Positions 10,321 to 34,961 of a stretch of DNA of 46,788 nucleotides are shown piece after piece; positions within the stretch are counted from its first letter, which is position 1; each line of letters starts with the position of its first letter. Below the pieces are notes generated by a model. The model worked only from the letters and a program-made list of their open reading frames with translations. It did no database searches and was not told where the DNA came from. Source of the DNA: Hyphochytrium catenoides (taxonomy: Eukaryota > Protista > Hyphochytriomycota). The stretch spans positions 1 through 46,788 of the forward strand of contig FLMG01000436.1 of NCBI GenBank assembly GCA_900088475.1, read 5' to 3'. The translations under genes and the position numbers were made by a program.

Positions 10321-11330
10321 TTCCCTATTCAGAGGGTTACATATCCTTTCGCTGCTACCAAGACATCAGTTGCACAGGGACAAATAGTACCAGTCATTCG
10401 ACGATGATCAGAGCGCCTGTGCCAAGATCCAAGATCTGCTCTTTTATGAGCCAGAAGCTATCGCAGTTATAGTCGGTGGCAGCTTCAGGCCAGTATAGTT
10501 ACGGTGCTTCGAGAGATAGTCCATCCGGCTACATATAGCTCAAGCATTTCATCGAAACGCGAGTAAAGGGTTTGCGCTGCCGTCCTCTCTGACCTCTGAT
10601 CCCTATCTCACACGATGAGGAAGCTGCTACGACTCTGTTCTCCTGTTGCTCCAGTTGAGCTGTCCCAATATGGCGTCTCTGGTATTCATCAGACATATAC
10701 TGAGGTTCTCTACCTTTCCTCCTTCTGCTTCCCAGATGTCGCGACGGAGGCACAAGGATAAATAAGCCTCTGGGCTGGGGGATCAACTGGTGCTTGACAT
10801 TACTAACCTGGAAGCTGCTTTCCTTGCGCCCTGGTTTATATCAAGCGAAAGGGTCTCTTCATCAGGGCCGATAAGTAATAATAGCTGTGCTCTAAGTAGC
10901 TAACTAACGAAGACGAAGCGATAAGTACTCTCTCGTTCCCACTCCGGGTTACGGCGCTATCACCAGCCAAACGAACGAACTAAATAAATAGTCACCTATT
11001 ATCTACCTATAGCAGCATGGGTGTACCAACAGCGGGCGGGCGAGCGGTTGACTATTCTGAGCCACATGCATACTTCTAGTCAGGTGTGCCTCCTCTCTTA
11101 TCCGTAACCGCTGTCCCAGGCGGCTTCTGAGCAAACGGCAGCAGCTGAGGTTGCTGAGCGAATATAAGTGAGCGAGCTCAGCCCCATCCTCTACCGTGCC
11201 AGGAAAGTCTAGCTAACCCACGAAAAAAGTCACCTTCATCAGTCTAGTGTGATACTCTACCGGCGAACGACTAATCTACTAGCTCTCGGTAATCTCCGCA
11301 GGCAAGGTATTCATAGTGAGCCACCTCTAC

Positions 11331-14300
11331 CTATTGCGGGTAGGTTGGAGCTGTGGAGCCGTCTACAGGGGCATGGGTATTACCCTCAGTGACCTTATGG
11401 CCCTGTCCTCCAATGTTCTGACCACACTCTGGGCAAGTGGACTTCTGCATTGGACCTCCACACTCCCCGACAGCGTACAAGTGCCCATCGGGACATCGGA
11501 ACCAGCCGCCAGACCGGATCTCACCTCTCATCGCTGCCACCACCTGGGCCAACTCCTCTTGCGTGACTCGACTTCTTCTTTCGAAGGAAGTTTTCATGCA
11601 CCCTTCCTCTCCTAGTAAGAGCTCGTCCCGTAGTCTTGCTTCGAACGCTTCGTAGCTGCCACACCGAGCAGGTAGTTGAATCAATTGAGACTCTGAGAGA
11701 AAGTGCACGTTCTCGTCAACGCTAGGGACCACGAAGACCTGGTGAAATGAGGAGGAAAGATGCGTGACAAGATGGCCAAACGATCTGCAAATCACCAGGC
11801 GCAGAGTAAGGTCAGACACGCGAGAGATCCACTCCATAAACCATCCCCGTAGCTTTTCCATGGCCATTCTATCAGCCCACGAGTCTTCGATAAAAGTGAT
11901 GCAGTCCTTGATCTCGGAGACATCCAAGTAATCGGTTCCAAAAAATAATAACTGAAGCTCCTTTCCAGTCATTGCGCCCACTTCTTCAGCTACGTTGAGC
12001 TTCAAAAAACCCTCCTGAAGCTTCTCCAATGAGCCTTGGCGTTGCCTAACCAGCCTGTGCCATATTGCCTCGCATATGACGCTTGCTTTATTCTCGTCCG
12101 TCACATTCTGTTCTGATAACGATCCCGTTAGCACCCCCACAGAGAAAGCATAATCTAGAGCATTCTGACGCCCACAGAGGATGTTTCGGTAGAGGATGGT
12201 GTCCTCCTCGCATGTCTCCAATAAATATGCTAGACAGATGTCTACGTCCGTTGGCTGTTTATTGTGGCCAAGAAGGAACCCCAACGAGGAACTGTTGAGG
12301 GTGATTGGCAGGCGGATCCCCTCGATCAGACACTTTGCCATCATGGTCCCAATAGTATAGAAGTCGTCTTGGTTGCCAGTGGCTGTGGGTAGGTAAGCTT
12401 TGCCTGTTGCTACAGCTATCTCCTCCCCACTAGAAGGCTCGTCCCATATTGTCTGCGTAAACAGCCCGTACTTTGGTCTCAGTATCTCACTGAAAAACTT
12501 TTCCATCATCTCTGCTAAGGGTCTTCGAACGCCACCGTCAGTAAGGATCTGAACAGGGCTGTGGATATCAATGATGGTAGAAAAGGCCCTTAAGAGGCTT
12601 CGGCAAAGTGCCTCGCTTTCATCTTCTACGTCTGTGATAGCTAGTCTCAGCTGTGTGGCTGGTGCTCTCTTCCGACTATTTGCAAGGCTCCGCATGACCA
12701 TTTTGACCTTGGCCACTGGATCGTACTTTGACGGTCGCCGCACCAGTAGCTCTTCCTGCAAGAGTTCTTGGGCTAGTAAGCGCTCTTCTGGCCTCAGACG
12801 TAGGAGCTGAGAGCAAATTCGTACATAGGCCTTCATATGTGCTTCTCGGAAGAAGTTACTGAGGATATTATAGTCGATGGCTGTAGGATCCATAAAGGCT
12901 AGACCGACCGTTCCTCGGAACTTGTCCGGAAACGCCTTAGGCAGGACTGGCAGCAGCGGCTCCAGCATCATACAACCCAACGACCACATGTCCAGGGCAA
13001 ACGGATGCTCTCGCCATGTCCCATCTTGAGCTTCGGGAGCTCCATAACCGAGTGTCAGGGCGCCATGTAAGGTCGTTGTCAGGGTGACTGCCTTATCGAT
13101 GTCTAAGCTAATTCCAAAGTCACACAAAGCGATTCTAGCTGAATCACTCAACAGAATGTTTTCTGGCTTAAGATCTCGGTGCACGATGCCTTTGGCATGA
13201 ATGTGTGCGAGAGCTTGAGCTATTTGATGGATAGTAGTTTGCAGCTGGAGCCACTCCTCGCCTTCTTCTGCAAAAGTATTGAACCGCTCTACGTGGCTCT
13301 GCAGCCCTGTCACCCACCGCCGCAAGTTGCCCTTCTCATAGAACGGCATCTGAATATAAGTAATGGTCTCTGGGTCGTTAATGTCAAGAAAGATACGCCT
13401 AATAGGGACCACGAGGGGATGCTTGAGATTGCATAACCGCTCAGCTTCTTTCCTGAACCCCTTCCGTCCAAGCAACTTCTTGATGACACAGAGTTGGCCA
13501 TCGCGATCCTTCATAACCTGCACGTTCGGACCTAAGTTACCGACCTCGACAGGCTCATAGTCCCTAATAGTGACACTTAAGTCCAGCGCCTTTGCTGCAA
13601 GTCCAGAGGGCAAGGCGCCAGCCACAGAGAGGGACTTCGGGTCGTCTGATAGAAGCTCCGGAAAGTGCTCAGGCACCCTCTTGTCTGACAGAATACTAGC
13701 AAGTTTGGCAGCCCGCTCCTGAAGTCCTTTCAAAGCATATTCTTTCTCTTTTTTCACTTCTTGGAGCTTCAATGCTCTTTGAGCATCATCCTCTTCCGCA
13801 ATTTCAATCTCGGTGTTGAGCCGCTTGATATCGTTGCGCAGTGGCTATGCTTGAGACTCAAGCTCCGCTCTCTCGGCTTTAGCCTTTGCTGCTCTGATGC
13901 CCAGATATTCTATGTCTTTCCATAGTTGGATGTTCTTCTCAAGCTCCAAGATGTCGGCACTGCGCTTTGGTTGGGCTACCTGGGAAAGAAAAGATTCCGA
14001 TGACGCTATCTCCCGAAGCCTGAGAAAGTATGAATCCATCCTCTGATGCATGGCCCTGAGACGGCTCTGGAAAGAAGTTCTCATCTCTTCTAACTCTTTT
14101 TGGAGCTGTGAATGTGTGGCCACTGTTCCCGCCATCTCCTGCAACTCAGGCAGGGCTAGAAGGACTTTATACCATGTCGTCTTCTTCAGCTTTGGCTGCT
14201 TGCTCTGCCAGAGGGTAAACTGTTTGTCAAGAGATTGCCACCTATCCATGCTCGGAATGTAGTTGTCAGCCAGCTCGTTCAGCAGCTGATCAAGCAGCTG

Positions 14301-17189
14301 CTTGACATTGTGTTGCCCCTGATCATAGCAGCGTTAGCCTAGCAGGAACTACTACATAATTTATCAGACAATGGCACACGCTACCTTCTGAGCAGATAGT
14401 GATGGAGGTAGAACCATAGAGGCCGTGGCAGCCAGAACGTGATTCTTGATATTCTTACGCAACTCATAGCTGTTTTCGCCCGCTCTCAGTAAGCTCAGCT
14501 GCTCTTCAAAGCTGCTAAGCAGCTGGCTCCGCTTTTCGTTCCGAATACTTACTTTACTCCCATCGCTAGGATCCTTCTTAGCTTCTGCAGATAGTCGCTT
14601 CACATCTTGAGTCAGCGCTAATGTTCTCTTGCTCCCCTGTTGCGCCTTAAGTTCATTACCCTCCAAGCGATCAAGAAGATCTCCGGTACCATCTAATGTC
14701 TCTGATAAGTGAAGCTTAACACATAGCTTTTCAATAGCCGTGAGGACGGGCTTATGCACCTTATCAGACAGGTGGAGCCCTATAGTACGCTTCATGATGT
14801 CTTGGAATATTTGATCTGGACGAAGGCTCTCAATTACCTCCGCCGTCTCCACGTCTGGCTCCACCGTAGCCCCTCCTGCACTTATGCGTTGCGGTGGGCT
14901 AGCCTGTTTGCCCGCTGCCCTGTTGTTCTCTTGCTGATCTATGTCACGCCATACCACTGCTAAGCTTTGAATCAAATCGCTGTGACCCTTCAGTATCTTC
15001 ACACATTCTTTCGAGTCCAGGTCCCAGATAGAGATCGAGTTGGCGCCGGATCCCGAGATGACCGTCTTACAATCTAGCGAGACTATGACCGTGTACACAC
15101 GGCCTCCACTTCCTAAGAGTGTAGCCTTGCAAGCCCCAGTGGTGAGGTCCCATACCCGAATGGTCTTATCCCAGGAGCCTGAGATTATAGTGGTGCAGTC
15201 CTGTGAGATGGTGACGCTGCGGACGGTATCAGTATGACCTCGGAGAACGTGCAAACAATGCCCGGAGTGTGTGTCCCAGACTCTAATTGTCCTATCTCTA
15301 GAACCGGACACCGCCGTCTGACCATTCAAAGAGATAGCCACGCTATAGATAATGTTCCTATGACCATGTAAGGGTGTCACGCACGCCTGGAGGTCTAGAT
15401 CCCAAACACGAACTGTCTTGTCTCCAGACCCAGAAACCACCTTCTTGCCGTTGACAGAGGCAGCGACGCTGTAAACTATCCCTTGATGGCCTTCCAAAAT
15501 TATTATGCACCTTCGTGACTCCAGATCCCACACCCAGATTGTTCCATCGTAACAACCTGAGATCAGCTGTCTGCCATCCGGAGATATGACGACGCAGACG
15601 ACTCCAGTGTTATGTCCTTGTAGGGTCTTCACACAGGATCCGGATTGAAGATCAAAGCATCTAACTTCCTTTCCTGTGGAGTTGGAGGCCACTAGCTTCC
15701 CATCAGGAGAGACTGACACATTTCCAGCCATATCGCTTTGTCCCTGTAAGGTCTTCAGGCACACTCCAGAAACGAAATCCCAGACGCGAATGGTCTTATC
15801 CCATGATCCTGAGACTATCGTGGCTCCACGTAGTTGCAATTCAGCTCCACTCTCTTTGAAAGTGTTTGAAGCAGTAGCAAGATTGAGGCCATCGATATCT
15901 ATGAAAGCAGCAGAAGCGATAGAGAAGGTAGTATTAGAAACGCTAGGCCTAACTGCTTCACAAGCGGGGCATTCCCTTTGGTGTGCGTTATTCCCGCACA
16001 GACAGAGCGTGCACTGCCAATCCTCCTTACTCCTCACAAGGGGCGTTGACAGACCCAGCGTTGATTTATCCGATTCAGCGTCAGTGCTCGAAGGAGCTGT
16101 AGGAAGCGGTGCGGGTCTGGGCTCTGAGGCGACTAGTGCCTTAGTGGCAGTATCAAACAGCAATGTAGGCATAACTACTGCGTCCTTTAGTGTTGGCTTA
16201 CGAGGTGCCTGAAATCCGCTCATCGCGACGCTCTCGACAGATGTGCTGTGACCTTCCAGGACCTTCACACACACCTCAGACTTCAAATCCCATATCCGGA
16301 GGGTCTTATCCTTAGATCCAGAGACCAGACTTCCACCATCGGGCGAGATAGCTATGGTCCAAACCTCCAGAGTGTGCCCTAGCAAGGTCCTCATACAGAC
16401 GCCGGAGTCCAGGTCCCAGACGCGGATCGTCATGTCCATAGAGCCCGAAAGCACTTTTGTTCCATCTGGCGAGATAGCCACAGCGGAGACTGTCTCCGTA
16501 TGCCCTTCTAGAGTTTTCAAGGAGATCCCAGAGGCCAAATCCCATATGCGCCCTGTCTTATCTACGGAGCCTGAAACCACCTTTGTCCCATCAGGCGATA
16601 TGGCAAGGGTCCAAACCGTTAGGCTATGTCCTTGCAGAGTCTTCACGCAGGCTCCAGCCTCAAGATCCCAGAGACGGATCGTACTGTCCAACGAACCTGA
16701 GACAAGCGTCTTTCCATCTGGGGAGATAGTCACGACACGGACGATCTTAGAATGCCCGAGCAGCGTTTTCAAACAAATCCCTGACTCCAAATCCCAAACA
16801 CATATTCCGTCATCTCCAGAGGCAGTCACCACTCTTTTGCCATCAGGTGATATAGCGACGCTGCGGACACCGGTGGTACGGCCCTGCAGCGTTCTAAGGC
16901 ATGCACCAGAACTCAACTCCCAGACACGTATTGTCTCGTCCCAGGAGCCGGAAACTACCTTCTTACCATCATTCGAAATAGCGACGCTACTCACAAACTC
17001 AGAATGGCCTTGCAGGATCCTCAGGCAGACCCCAGTGAGCACATCCCAGACTCGGATTTCACCATCTTCAGAGCCCGACACCACTATCAGGCCTCCATCG
17101 TCTTGGTGGCGCGACCCCTTCTCCGTCAGTGCACCACCGGTGGTCCCTACCTTCTCTTCCTCTCGACCAAGATGCTCGTCAGCTTGCAT
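11331..17189 (-). CDS. WD40(7)-RanBP2 ZnF-WD40(7)-coiled coil-Ser/Thr kinase-HECT-like-RZ finger protein; exons 14385-17189 and 11331-14318; one in-frame TAG at 13845-13847 (possible recent pseudogene allele)
   Basis: ORFs 14364-17321, 13845-14249 and 11331-13772 share one frame. A 66-nt GT-AG intron joins the first two and only a single TAG separates the last two. Motifs: GH..WD repeats; WQCTLCLCGNNAHQRECPAC; VIKK, HRDLKPEN, DFG, APE; DGG..FF..PKYGLF, VTDENK, ELQLLFFG; WFRCPDGHLYAVGECGGPMQKSTCPECGQNIGG. The true start may lie further upstream. Confidence 0.85.
14319..14384 (-). other. 66-nt spliceosomal intron
   Basis: AAG|GTAGCG...GCTAAC...ATCAG|GGG; removes in-frame TGA/TAA and gives ...LSAQK-GQHNVKQLLDQ... 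Confidence 0.85.
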
Positions 17190-18730
17190 TCTAGTAATGA
17201 ACGCGCTACTATTCTCTAAGCGCTCAAACCTTCTGTAGTGATGACACACGGCTTGCGAGGATGACGCCTGGAAGGGACAAGATCTAAAAGAAGGAGGCGA
17301 AAGCGGACGACAGAGGCCCAACTACTATCTCATACTGCGGAAAGTGTGTTGTTACTGTTTGTGATATCTTTTGATGTTGCCCCGAATGTCCGTTACAACG
17401 TAGTGACCTTTGTGTATTATAAGGTGAAAGAGGAAGTCGTACTTCTGAAAAAGACAGATTTTTGCTCGCTTTGCTAGTCTCCACTATGGAGCTCGAGGTG
17501 GCTGATGAGCCTAGGCACAAAACTAAAAAACTAACTGCCCATGATGAAGGCTCTGCGTGATGAAGTGATAAAGTGTGTGGATGCGTTCAGATTGGTACTA
17601 TGATGCGGGGGGCAAGGGGTTCCTTGAAGATAGCACTTTCGATCGGTAACAAGTAGTCAGCTAATAACAGGGAGCGCAACTCAACAATCATACGATGGTC
17701 AGAAGAGATTTCTTCTAGACGACGTCTGCTATATCTTGTGAGAGTGAGCCCGCCGCCTGGCTCCGGAGGGGCTCTAGTGACTTAGAGGCCTGTCACGGTA
17801 TCTAATCTTTTCTTCTAGAGCAGGCTAACTCTCAGCCTCCCTTAGCTGACCGAATACTCTTCCGTCCACCGATATTAGCCTTATCCGTTCAGGCCAACTT
17901 CTTTCTCCTGCAGCCACTTCGCTTCCTATTTTCACCTCTGCGTCTTCTTGTTATGGCGCTCATTGGTACGGGGCTAACCGTTTTTTCACCTCCTATAAAT
18001 TTTAGACCAAGGGCCGCATCTTCTTCAGAGAAGAGATTATTGCTGACAACTGGATGTTGTCACCGCAGCTTGGTGACCGACGAGCCATTTTAAAGACGCA
18101 GTTCTAGTAGCACTCTATCCGTTACGCCGCTCCTCACATCCGTCAAACTCTGCATCTTCTTGAGCGAAGGAGGAGAAAGAGGTATCACTGACTACGACGA
18201 AGTTGTTGGACTGGCGCGTTAGACTAGGATACTGAATTTTTCTTTTGAACCTCCAACTGTCGAATTCTTTTACGGAGTATCATACATCAAGGAGCGCAGC
18301 CCCTATTTGCTGCCAATCGCCTACGAGTGACTATACTTTATGCACAGCGTGGCTCTCGCTTCCTTGGCCCTCGTTGAGCATCCCGAGACCGTTTATCAGG
18401 CATCATCATCTGCCAGATGTCGCTCGTCCTTACATTTTAATCTTCCTCTCTCACCTCCATGCTCCTCCCCGTATGTGTTGCTGTAAGTCTGCAATACTAC
18501 GACGCTTTGGCTGCTGCGTTGCACTGGGGATGCTATCGCTTGTGTCTACCAACCGATCCCCTAGAAGGATACCGTCGATTGACTCTTTCAGGGGCCATAA
18601 AGTCGAAATGGTGATTTATAAAGACAGCGGTAAAGGCAGAGAGACCTCCAACAGTTAACCCTCACTGCTAATGACGCTATCACGTAGTGATTTTTCTCGC
18701 TCTACAATTGTTCCTGCCTCATCGCATTGT

Positions 18731-29870: not shown

Positions 29871-30503
29871 CTCCGTCTCGTTCTCTTCTATTCTCCATCT
29901 TCTGCGGCGATCTCCTAGGCTACTTCCTCCGCACGTGCACTACCTCGGTCTCAGTCTGCAACCAACACGGCAAAGGCGAAACAATTTGCCTGCATCCGTG
30001 CTGCTCACTGATCACAGCTTCACGTCATGGCTTCCTCGCACGGTCATCTACTTCAGTTGGACTTTTTGTCTTGCTTCGAAAATGGCCTACTCAGTGCCAT
30101 TCGCGCTCTTTATATATATATGTACATATATATCATACGCTATGGATGCTATAAATGACACCTTCATCCCTTCAGGGCTCTTGTTTAGGATCGCTAAGCT
30201 GGAATCCCAGCATCATCATATGCCAGTTATCGCTCGATTTTGCACTTCAGTCACGCTTGCAGCTCTCTCTCTTCTTGTTCTCTCTGCTCTGTCTCTCTCT
30301 TTGCCGATCCTTCTCCTTGTAGTGCTGCACAAAGGTTAGAGTTCGGTCGTCGTTGCTATACACCTGGCTTGCCTACTATCTCTCTCGTCTCTCCCTCGTG
30401 TCTCCGAAGGGAAGCACTACAATAATACTTCATCCTGCTTCTCACTCCGAGGACTATGTGACGAAATGGTGCCAACAAAGACTTTAAATGAGCAGCAGAA
30501 AAA

Positions 30504-32568: not shown

Positions 32569-34961
32569 ATGAAGCTGCAATCCCTTCTCCTAGCAGCTTT
32601 TAGCTGCTTCCTTGCGGCTGCGGAAGCCGCGCGAGTGGATCGTTGCACTGTCCCAAACTTTATCGCTCCCACCTACGATGACGGGCCAGCAGCTGGCACC
32701 ACGCCCACGCTTCTGGACACCCTGATCAAGGAAAAAGCAAAGCTAACGTTCTTTGTGGTTGGCCAGATGTTAGATAGTGCTGAGGGTAAAGAAATCCTAA
32801 AGAAGATGGACGCCGATGGCCAGCACATTGCAATGCACTCTCACACCCACCAAGATATCGACAAGATGACCAGGGAACAGATAGCAGAGGAGGTCAAGCA
32901 GAACAGTGACAGAGTCAACCATGTTATCAACAAGCGCCCAAGGTTCTTCCGCTGCCCATTCGGCTCCTGTGGACCCGAGAAAGTGGCTATTTTGGAGTCG
33001 CTGGGCCTGAGAGTGATTCACTGGAGCGATGACGCGGGTTAGTAGCAGAGCGACAGCCACTGCACCCGTTGATCGCTTTTCTTCTGAGGCTCGTCCTTTG
33101 TTCCTTTTTTCAGTATTCTGGCTGTTCTACTTCATATGCCCAGTCTCTGCCTAGTCGTGTACTTTGCCCTCTCTCACTTGTCATACTGACCCTTACTTTG
33201 GCCTCTTCCCCTTACCCGCCAGGTGACACTAATGACTGGAGGCCCGAGAACGCCAACAAGGTAGCGAACGTGGTCAACACGTACAGGAAGGCATTGGACG
33301 ACCCCAACGTCAGCATCTTCCTGCAGCACGACCTATACAGCTGGTCAGTGCAGGCGGCTAAGGAATTCATTCCGCTTATCAGATCTAAGGGAAAAGTCGT
33401 GGCAACCGTACCGGAATGTTTGGGAGACTCGAAGCTGTACTACACAGAGGCCGAGTGGACAGCTATCCTCCAGCAGTTCCAAGGAGGAGTCGCAGCCCCT
33501 ACACCTTCCCTTACTCCAGCTCCTCGGCCTGTAACTGTTGCACCAGTAGCACCTACACCGGCTCCAGTTGCACCTACACCGGCTCCAGTTGCACCTACAC
33601 CGGCTCCAGTTGCACCTACACCGCCTCCAGAGGCTCCCACACTAGCTCCTGTGGCGCCAACATCAGCGCCTGGGGCTCCTAGCCCTGAGTCCCCTCCTGC
33701 CACCACGCAGCCAGCGGCTACGGGGGCACCGCAAGTTCCGACTTTGGCCCCGATCGAGGCTCCTAACACGCCAGCACCTGGACCCAGCGAGAGTCCTTCC
33801 GCTACCCCCTCTCCCAACTCTGAAGCCCCTGCACCTGGCTCTCAGTCTCCCCCTATTTTGACACCGATCACGGACAGTCCTTACTATCCTCCAGCAGCAC
33901 CAAGTGAGCTTCCTACCAGCTCCACACCGACATCCGCTCCAGCCACAGGAGGAGAGACGTCCGCCCCACCTGCCTCACAGCTCCCTACTTTAGCTCCGAT
34001 GGAGCCATCCACTGAGGCGCCTCCGATTGGAGAGCAAACTCCTCCACCTTCCTCTCAGTCTCCTCCAGTGGTGACTCCAATCACTGACTCTCCTAACTAT
34101 CCTCCGACATCACCAAGTGAGCTGCCTGCAACCTCATCGCCCACCAGTTCTCCAACCACAGGCGCGGAGACCCCTGCCCCCAGTGCTTCGGAGATTCCTA
34201 CTCTCGCGCCTATGGAACCACCAGCAGTCACCCCCACTGCAGGAGGAAGCGAGACTCCTGCCCCTGGTTCGCAACAGCCAACCTCAAGTCCCGCAGCAGC
34301 TCCCACCACAGCTCCCAGCGGGGATCTAGTGCAAGACCCCACTCTGCCGCCTGCGACTCCATCTCAAGCTCCGGGTTCAGCTCCTCCTGTTACGGAGACC
34401 CCTGCTGCTCCCACTAACACCCCTCCTGCATCTACTGAGACCCCTGCTGTTCCCGTTCCCTCATCTTCGGCACCCGCACCCCAGGAGCAATGTGGTGCCG
34501 CACAGAACAACGTTGACTACTTTGGCAATGACCTCAAGTCGACCAGAAGGAAGAGATCATCGGACTGCTGCGCTGACTGCCTTCAGACTCAAGGCTGCGA
34601 GGGCTATGTGTGGACCAAGTACAGAGGAGGGACCTGCTGGCTCAAGAGCAGTCTTTCCTCTCGGCGGACATGGAGCTACGGTGCTGTCTCCGCCGCTGTA
34701 ATAGCTTCTCCAAGCGGTGACTCCTCCACCCCACCAGCTGAGGGATGCACAAAAATGGAGAGAGGCATTGACTATTTTGGAGACGACATCGGGAATGCTC
34801 GTGCGCCAAGAGCGAAAGACTGCTACGACCTTTGCAGAAAGAAGAAAGGTTGCACTGCCTTTGCCTGGAATTCCTACCGAGGAGGGACCTGCTGGCTAAA
34901 GAACGGCACCGGGAAGCGGAAGTACGACTCCAGCGTTACCTCTGGCACTGTTTGTCTCTAA
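32569..34961 (+). CDS. Secreted CE4 polysaccharide/chitin deacetylase with Pro/Thr/Ser stalk and two C-terminal PAN/Apple domains; exons 32569-33037 and 33223-34961 (735 aa)
   Basis: Signal peptide; motifs TYDDGP, HSHTH, RCPFG, DTNDW, LQHD; splicing restores IHWSDDAG-DTNDWR, colinear with the paralogue IHWSGDEGDTNDWR; two DYFG.D...C...C....GC....W..Y.GGTCWLK domains. Confidence 0.92.
33038..33222 (+). other. 185-nt spliceosomal intron
   Basis: G|GTTAGT...ACTGAC...pyrimidine tract...CCAG|GT; frame restored. Confidence 0.9.

Follow-up and report, generated by a model that had tools for sequence, protein, structure and literature searches.

The two animal proteins to which this locus invites comparison are the RZ-finger ubiquitin ligases RNF213 and ZNFX1, which act in cell-autonomous immunity. 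In RNF213, the nucleophile and the general base are a Cys/His pair of the RZ finger (C4516/H4537), and their counterparts in ZNFX1 are C1860/H1881. In ZNFX1, ubiquitin is handed to the RZ finger by a Miz domain. A different architecture was described for the bikont 'GL-Bikonta' proteins, in which an 'unusual protein kinase domain' is coupled with a HECT of highly divergent sequence; the stramenopile Ectocarpus is among the protists having such kinase and divergent HECT proteins (Grau-Bove et al., 2013; PMC3673628).

The window, that is, the whole stretch of DNA analysed here, is a contig of 46,788 nucleotides from Hyphochytrium catenoides (FLMG01000436.1). An earlier note on it had proposed a hidden single gene in which two WD40 propellers, a zinc finger, a coiled coil, a kinase, a HECT-like region and an RZ finger follow one another. 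This order is borne out by Pfam matches (WD40, Pkinase, HECT and ZnF_RZ-type) and, for the RanBP-type finger, is indicated by its residue pattern. The gene belongs to an uncharacterised family of protists and green algae, whose members combine a repeat domain, a long helical linker, a kinase, a Cys-less HECT and an RZ finger. The reading that we favor, at a probability of about 0.6, is that the locus is a single gene of this family, that its product is a two-step, RBR-like ubiquitin ligase, and that the copy in the window carries a premature TAG.

Gene structure and the repeat region

The gene spans three minus-strand ORFs in a single frame, which a 66-nt intron and one TAG join into 1930 codons in total (935 + 157 + TAG + 837), in agreement with the earlier count of about 1930 (Table 1). 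The lead ahead of the repeats is similar to that of the Lagenidium giganteum relative (~40 residues). The intron has a CTAAC branch motif 14 nt ahead of its CAG acceptor, and its codon-usage score is -1.40, compared with +0.20 for the exons. Beyond the intron, there is exactly one interruption, the TAG. Pieces A, B, and C align, in the same order, to a single ORF of Lagenidium that runs for 1741 codons without interruption (E = 6e-17, 2e-10, and 3e-134, respectively), and the alignment crosses the spliced junction without a 22-residue gap, which supports the splice weakly. By sequence comparison, the assignment of the whole locus to a single gene is supported.

Table 1. Features of the gene, with positions in the window
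Feature	Position	Strand	Basis or remark
ORFs	17321..14364, 14249..13845, 13772..11331	-	same frame in all three
Gene	17189..11331	-	one 66-nt intron and one premature TAG
ATG start codon	17187..17189	-	first ATG of the frame; first WD unit ~47 codons on
WD40 propeller 1	16155..17108	-	seven 42-residue units and closing strand; Pfam WD40 and beta-propeller families
RanBP2-type zinc finger, inter-propeller linker	15942..16028	-	Pfam Zn_ribbon_RanBP (PF00641), just under cut-off
WD40 propeller 2	14910..15842	-	seven 42-residue units and closing strand; Pfam
Helical/coiled-coil linker, part 1	14385..14909	-	end of exon 1; frame open
Intron, 66 nt, GT-AG	14319..14384	-	donor AAG/GTAGCG, CAG acceptor, five in-frame stops
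Helical linker, part 2	13848..14318	-	157 codons, upstream of TAG
Premature in-frame TAG	13845..13847	-	follows codon 1092
Helical linker, part 3	13542..13844	-	no ATG; alignable to both P0001 and the Lagenidium ORF
Protein kinase domain	12750..13541	-	Pfam Pkinase (PF00069), E = 5.6e-33
HECT fold, N-lobe and C-lobe, no catalytic cysteine	11610..12707	-	Pfam HECT (PF00632)
HECT catalytic Cys position, Glu codon here	11691..11693	-	profile alignment to HUWE1
RZ finger	11373..11534	-	Pfam ZnF_RZ-type (PF20173)
RZ nucleophile Cys	11460-11462	-
RZ general-base His	11397-11399	-
Terminal stop, TAG	11331..11333	-	homologues P0001 and P0121 finish at the same aligned residue

The WD40 region (Pfam E = 2.9e-133, 12 stretches) consists of 14 units of exactly 42 residues each, with a mean protein identity of 43% (range about 40-67%), and no tandem repeats at the DNA level were reported in it by Tandem Repeats Finder. 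The propellers had been likened to the ligand sensors of Apaf-1 and the fungal HET-E/NWD receptors. The likeness holds for the tandem, regular, consensus-like WD40 propellers, the large multidomain protein, and the variable repeat domains of the family. It ends there: Pfam scans of every piece of the gene found no NB-ARC/NACHT NTPase, and the near-identical internal WD repeats that mark concerted evolution are absent.

The finger between the propellers scores 25.0 bits (E = 1.1e-5), slightly below the 27-bit cut-off of Zn_ribbon_RanBP, although its W-x-C-x2-C-x3-N-x6-C-x2-C pattern is complete; the T-F pair, which binds ubiquitin in NZF fingers, is not in its sequence. No Pfam family matches the first part of the linker. 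The second part matches residues 513-589 of the Lagenidium ORF (E = 2e-10), and upstream of the TAG the linker has no detectable counterpart in the members from Mesostigma or metagenomes.

Kinase, HECT fold and RZ finger

The HECT match reaches 58.6 bits (cut-off 23.9; E = 1e-15). A profile of the family matches the HECT domains of HUWE1, NEDD4, and E6AP through the C-lobe (in HUWE1, residues 102-394 of 405). An AlphaFold2 model of the region (pLDDT 83.5, pTM 0.79) was compared with solved HECT domains by Foldseek, and matched them at E ~6e-14 over ~400 aligned columns (5.7e-14 to 6xz1). 'HECT-like', the earlier term, is therefore an understatement of a full bilobal fold, albeit one without the catalytic cysteine. 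The corresponding codon is Glu, and across 19 family members no Cys is conserved at or near this column. Since the cysteine is missing, the protein has a HECT fold and yet is not a canonical HECT enzyme. It resembles HUWE1, NEDD4, and E6AP in having both lobes, by sequence profile and by structure, and differs from them in the Glu and in the position of the domain, which is not C-terminal but is followed by the RZ finger.

The RZ finger that the earlier note had supposed from its pattern proved to be a real one with all its parts (76.1 bits, cut-off 27; E = 1.6e-21; positions 4-54 of the 54 in the profile), and the family profile matches the RZ region of RNF213 at E ~6e-11. Its spacing, C-x3-H-x6-C-x8-C-x2-C-x8-H, is exactly that of C4505/H4509/C4516/C4525/C4528/H4537 in RNF213. 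The zinc ligands Cys, His, Cys, and Cys are spaced like C4505/H4509/C4525/C4528, and, identically to RNF213, the nucleophile Cys lies 7 residues past the His ligand and the base His 9 past the last Cys. A predicted helix ahead of the RZ strands is present in the model. The C-H-C-C-C-H residues are retained in 13 of the 18 family members that have the RZ part.

The kinase catalytic motifs are intact, as had been claimed: the beta3 Lys, the alphaC Glu, HRDLKPEN (with the HRD Asp and the catalytic-loop Asn), DFG, and APE are all present. In the motif columns of 21 members, the catalytic residues are conserved in most, and DFG is lost in some. None of the 21 aligned members has the Gly-rich loop GxGxxG, and the window gene shows only G-x-x-G; kinase activity is thus plausible, but not assured.

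The architecture is not unique to the window gene, since the combination of kinase, Cys-less HECT and RZ finger recurs in databases. It is found in hypothetical proteins of Mesostigma viride and Myrmecia bisecta and in many metagenome ORFs, among them single ORFs of 1858-1884 residues. At least 15 clusters (50% identity) have the kinase, HECT-like and RZ parts after long N-terminal extensions, which in several clusters include ankyrin repeats, and all full-length relatives have such extensions. In Mesostigma, Myrmecia and the metagenomes, the module stands behind ankyrin repeats. The earlier statement that the architecture is not recognised in any described protein was too strong. The published description of the G2E3-like GL-Bikonta proteins, a kinase with a divergent HECT in protists, fits the architecture, and the family may belong to that clade; RZ fingers and WD40 or ankyrin N-termini are not in that paper (PMC3673628), and the RZ finger was still undefined in 2013. 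The RZ part is missing from two named relatives, Lagenidium and a partial Cymbomonas model. Lagenidium has a different Cys-rich module at the RZ position, and the Cymbomonas model has no such end. The Lagenidium module may be RBR/IBR-like, a weak assignment for which E is 5e-4 with IBR_1 and 0.65 with Ariadne RING2, and the language-model similarity is 0.90-0.94.

Among the alternatives, the one that survives best, though still unlikely, is that the gene is a dead family copy, or that the family serves as a signalling scaffold whose HECT and RZ parts are structural or zinc-binding and transfer no ubiquitin; it would then be no immune ligase. Architectures of repeats and a kinase, such as that of LRRK2, belong to signalling proteins, which would suit a scaffold. 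The premature stop and the loss of DFG or RZ residues in some members point the same way, and a HECT that is non-functional has a precedent in G2E3, where ligase activity comes from other zinc fingers (PMC3673628). However, the 837 codons past the TAG are fully open and retain every family-invariant residue, and the RZ Cys/His pair, which is dispensable for the zinc-binding fold, is conserved in most members.

The premature TAG

The column of the TAG is occupied by sense codons in the homologues, K in P0001 and E (GAA) in Lagenidium, in ungapped alignment. Codon usage is unbroken across it (0.255 against an in-frame mean of 0.199, and above every off-frame window). Because TAG terminates this same gene at its conserved C-terminus, the premature TAG is a true stop, and its position in coding sequence implies a recent nonsense allele or pseudogene, if not a base error of the assembly. 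On the same two grounds, plain read-through of the TAG cannot be assumed, and in its assembled form the copy codes for no more than the WD40/coiled-coil part of 1092 residues, barring a base error, an allelic difference or readthrough of the TAG. The window copy may yield only this part, or no product.

Decoding of the TAG is improbable, whether by programmed readthrough, with both a short WD40 product and a long, full-length one being made, or by reassignment of TAG to an amino acid. A C directly after the stop is a weak termination context in eukaryotes, and the base following this stop is C. No readthrough element was identified, however, and TAG terminates four other long ORFs in the window besides this gene. 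The occurrence of a single TAG in 1930 codons excludes reassignment.

It is very improbable that the locus comprises two genes, the first encoding a WD40/zinc-finger/coiled-coil protein that stops at the TAG and the second a kinase-HECT-RZ protein transcribed separately downstream. TAG does serve this organism as an ordinary terminator, and metagenome gene callers list P0001 as an 832-residue, stand-alone kinase-HECT-RZ protein; this, however, is an ORF called in prokaryote style, 205 nt downstream of another ORF on the same strand of its contig, and it stands against the long N-terminal extensions of all full-length relatives. The stretch from the TAG to the kinase N-lobe contains no ATG, and the first Met past the TAG is inside that lobe, so that a product begun there would miss strands beta1-beta2. 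In addition, both flanks of the TAG are colinear with the one uninterrupted Lagenidium ORF, and coding codon usage is continuous through it.

The least probable reading places the TAG inside a second in-frame intron of 135 nt (13979..13845, GTAGCC...CATAG), which would leave the protein intact and ~45 residues shorter: the donor is like that of the first intron, the AG of the TAG is a possible acceptor and the length is divisible by three, but the 132 nt upstream of the TAG have coding codon usage (72nd percentile among in-frame windows, above all off-frame and flanking windows, against -1.40 for the first intron), P0001 and the Lagenidium ORF span the stretch ungapped, and it holds no stop except the TAG itself.

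Proposed mechanism and comparison with known ligases

For the intact gene, read as a single two-step ligase, a mechanism can be proposed. The Cys-less HECT would dock E2~ubiquitin, the RZ cysteine would take the ubiquitin by transthiolation, and the paired histidine would help its transfer onto the substrate. By analogy, the handover from HECT to RZ would parallel the passage of ubiquitin from Miz to RZ in ZNFX1. Choice of the target or ligand would fall to the WD40 propellers; through the coiled coil the protein could oligomerise, and the kinase could act as a switch or as a second output. The candidate cell-autonomous immune system of the earlier note, in which the kinase stands in for the motor of RNF213 and ZNFX1, is likewise hypothetical, and the gene has no NTPase switch.

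More tentatively, these proteins may represent a third class of RZ ligase in protists and green algae, in which a Cys-less HECT has been re-used as an E2~ubiquitin dock for an RZ finger (in oomycetes, for an Rcat-like module) and wired to a kinase and to interchangeable WD40 or ankyrin sensors. Such a class would possibly be an ancient surveillance or defence module predating animal RNF213 and ZNFX1.

In comparison with RNF213 and ZNFX1, the window gene shares the zinc ligands and the Cys/His pair of the RZ finger and the preceding helix. Its RZ finger could be fed by a second E3-type domain directly upstream, an arrangement also seen in ZNFX1. The gene has no dynein-like AAA core, SF1 helicase, RING or Miz; it has instead the Cys-less HECT upstream of the RZ finger, the kinase and the N-terminal WD40 propellers. 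In comparison with RBR ligases, it lacks RING1, IBR, and Rcat, whereas the proposed logic resembles that of RING1 to Rcat, in that a module docking the E2 precedes a small, zinc-bound one that holds the catalytic Cys. A further likeness to RBR ligases is seen in the Lagenidium relative, in which the putative IBR/Rcat-like module takes the place of the RZ finger.

Structure of the gene and its interruption

The earlier note had joined three ORFs of one frame into a gene of about 1930 codons by way of a 66-nt intron and one TAG, and this assembly holds: from the first ATG at 17189 (minus), the pieces comprise 935, 157 and 837 codons, which with the TAG included make 1930 (935 + 157 + TAG + 837). 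The intron contains five in-frame stops, is the only in-frame GT-AG choice that clears all five, and scores -1.40 on codon usage (strongly non-coding) versus +0.20 for the exons. At 11325-11333 (minus) the terminal TAG runs straight into GTAGAG, a sequence similar to GTAGCG at the donor of intron 1; this end is taken as the true C-terminus because homologues end at the same residue.

Features of the kinase-HECT-RZ gene in the window
Feature	Position	Strand	Remarks
ORF 1	17321..14364	minus	same frame as ORFs 2 and 3
ORF 2	14249..13845	minus	same frame as ORFs 1 and 3
ORF 3	13772..11331	minus	same frame as ORFs 1 and 2
Intron, 66 nt	14384..14319	minus	AAG/GTAGCG start; CTAAC branch motif 14 nt before CAG acceptor
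Premature in-frame stop TAG	13847..13845	minus	second join of the three ORFs

Translation of the gene as assembled would stop after 1092 residues, ahead of the kinase, and the question of whether one gene or two are present is best answered from the oomycete Lagenidium giganteum. A contig of L. giganteum ARSEF 373 (NSDO01000033.1; PMC10190603) carries a single uninterrupted ORF of 1741 codons (L002:7451-12676, plus strand) in the order WD40, helical linker, Pkinase, HECT N-lobe and Cys-rich C-terminus. The three window pieces match this ORF in the same order: the WD40 part (E = 6e-17), the 157 codons that precede the TAG (residues 513-589, E = 2e-10) and the 837 codons that follow it (residues 645-1398, E = 3e-134). 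The stretch from the TAG to the kinase N-lobe has no ATG, homologues align across the TAG without a gap and have sense residues in its place (K in P0001, the closest relative; E in the Lagenidium ORF), and all of the longer relatives have large N-terminal extensions ahead of the kinase. Together these comparisons argue that 17189..11331 (minus) is one gene, as had been claimed. In the linker upstream of the TAG the Lagenidium ORF is the only match, no homology to the Mesostigma or metagenome members being detectable there.

Reassignment of TAG was ruled out, because TAG ends the window gene at its conserved C-terminus, where homologues also end, and is the terminator of four other long ORFs in the window. 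A 135-nt in-frame intron (13979..13845) that would remove the stop was rejected on codon usage and on homologue alignment across the stretch: measured against the codon usage of the gene itself, the last 132 nt ahead of the TAG reach 0.255, the 72nd percentile among in-frame windows and higher than every off-frame or flanking window, and the stretch is therefore coding. The interruption in the window copy is a true stop codon. Past it the frame is open for 837 codons in which every family-invariant residue is retained, and the interruption is therefore judged to be either very recent, or an allele, or an error in one base; codons for K, E and Q all differ from TAG by one substitution.

One other place in the window, and no more, has two open stretches of over 100 codons each linked by a single TAG, at 30337-30339 (plus); the translation is of low complexity and the joined frame is probably not a gene. 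Antisense ORFs of 178 and 294 codons opposite the WD40 exons (15676-17238, plus) are most likely a by-product of sense-strand codon bias. Elsewhere in the window, an intronless ORF of 467 codons (1365-2768, minus) encodes a NodB polysaccharide (chitin-type) deacetylase domain, whose nearest Atlas clusters are fungal (Basidiomycota), and an ORF of 630 codons (33069-34961, plus) with PAN domains at its C-terminus lies in a stretch of raised G+C (0.58 vs ~0.49 around it).

Domains, HECT fold and RZ finger

Pfam confirmed all the parts that had been named from the sequence, namely WD40 propellers (E = 2.9e-133), a zinc finger, a kinase (Pkinase, E = 5.6e-33), a HECT-like region (58.6 bits, cut-off 23.9, covering profile positions 4-228 of 306) and, at the C-terminus, a ZnF_RZ-type finger (76.1 bits, cut-off 27). 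The zinc finger (Zn_ribbon_RanBP, 25.0 bits) falls slightly below its 27-bit cut-off and has the full cysteine pattern. Each of the two propellers in the WD region has seven units, and all 14 units are exactly 42 residues long and mutually 40-67% identical; at the DNA level no tandem array was found in the gene. The helical linker of about 430 residues has no match to a Pfam family. The kinase, claimed to have intact catalytic motifs, does retain the beta3 Lys, alphaC Glu, HRDLKPEN, DFG and APE, as do most family members, and the Gly-rich loop is absent from every member compared.

The region named as HECT-like has a complete HECT fold that lacks the catalytic cysteine. A profile built from 19 family members aligns to the solved HECT domains of HUWE1, NEDD4 and E6AP through the C-lobe, and places the catalytic Cys of HUWE1 opposite a Glu of the window gene; no conserved Cys was found at or beside this column in any family member examined. 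The AlphaFold2 model of the last 458 residues (mean pLDDT 83.5, pTM 0.79) matches solved HECT domains with a Foldseek E of ~6e-14 over ~400 columns, and a helix ahead of the RZ strands is visible in it. The RZ finger itself keeps the four zinc ligands and the Cys/His pair with spacing identical to RNF213, and all six residues are kept in 13 of the 18 members that have the RZ part.

The protein family and its members

The HECT-RZ part, used as query in an exhaustive search without a profile, returned 17 proteins at E <= 1e-30, and the combination of kinase, HECT-like and RZ occurs in at least 15 clusters. The earlier note did not recognise the architecture from any described protein, but kinase, Cys-less HECT and RZ recur in Mesostigma, Myrmecia and metagenome ORFs. 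The family of the window gene has attracted little notice and is unusual in its E3 design; the architecture is not unique. Named sources of members are Mesostigma viride (at least six loci), Myrmecia bisecta, Lagenidium giganteum and Cymbomonas tetramitiformis (a partial member with kinase and HECT); the others are metagenome ORFs. The closest named relatives of the kinase-HECT-RZ part are on two short contigs in an Amoeboaphelidium occidentale assembly (46-51% identity). These sequences (L001 and P0122, assembly GCA_023515795.1, contigs of 1.4-1.6 kb) could be pieces of a single gene, and their source may be a different organism that shared the culture. Scans for metagenome loci with P0001 and with alignment A1 found none, and a protein homologue search with region 700-1400 of the Lagenidium ORF gave no matches at E <= 1e-20, a threshold that was probably too strict.

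Recognisable N-termini are ankyrin repeats, with WD40 instead in the Lagenidium protein and the window gene. A Mesostigma protein of 2185 residues (P0127) has a complete USP7-like deubiquitinase (MATH, UCH and USP7 C-terminal domains) ahead of kinase-HECT-RZ; either the model is a merged one or the protein is a fusion of deubiquitinase and ligase. Members are labelled in databases as 'hypothetical protein', 'serine/threonine protein kinase' or 'mitogen-activated protein kinase kinase'. The public Lagenidium model DBA03693.1 (891 residues) starts within the kinase domain and is the last part of the 1741-codon ORF, which adds WD40 repeats and the helical linker; it is one example of the truncation or splitting that the analysis shows in the family's public models. 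The literature search found no paper describing a kinase-HECT-RZ protein, and the report of kinase with divergent HECT in protists (Grau-Bove et al., 2013; PMC3673628) predates the definition of the RZ finger.

Proposed mechanism and comparison with known ligases

The earlier interpretation is partly supported: the gene is real and its E3 design unusual, but this copy has a true stop and the architecture is shared. The propellers might choose the target, the coiled coil might oligomerise, and the kinase could be a switch or a second output. An enzyme that is regulated and directed to targets is suggested by the presence of a kinase and by N-termini that alternate between WD40 and ankyrin repeats, in lineages whose innate defence is almost unknown. 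An immune role is conceivable; variable repeat domains, lineage-specific paralogues and patchy distribution count for it, and the absence of an NTPase switch and of a hyper-conserved repeat array counts against it.

The RZ-finger experiments found in the literature concern the human immune ligases RNF213 and ZNFX1, in which the finger modifies substrates as unusual as LPS and RNA with ubiquitin and seems to depend on a partner upstream that recruits the E2. The simplest reading of the window gene is that the HECT fold would dock E2~ubiquitin and the RZ Cys would act as the ubiquitin acceptor. This is consistent with the Lagenidium relative, in which the HECT likewise lacks the Cys and the RZ position is taken by a different Cys-rich module, which looks RBR/IBR-like (IBR/Rcat-like) on weak evidence (IBR_1, E = 5e-4; language-model neighbours named RBR-type, 0.90-0.94). 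A complete RZ finger paired with a full HECT fold that lacks its own catalytic Cys, in every member examined, is a natural experiment on the assembly of transthiolating E3 modules, and predicts a testable HECT-to-RZ relay. In ZNFX1 an E2-binding Miz domain supplies the RZ finger, which is most effective in such an RBR-like relay of two steps. In the window gene a complete HECT fold without a nucleophile lies just upstream of the RZ finger.
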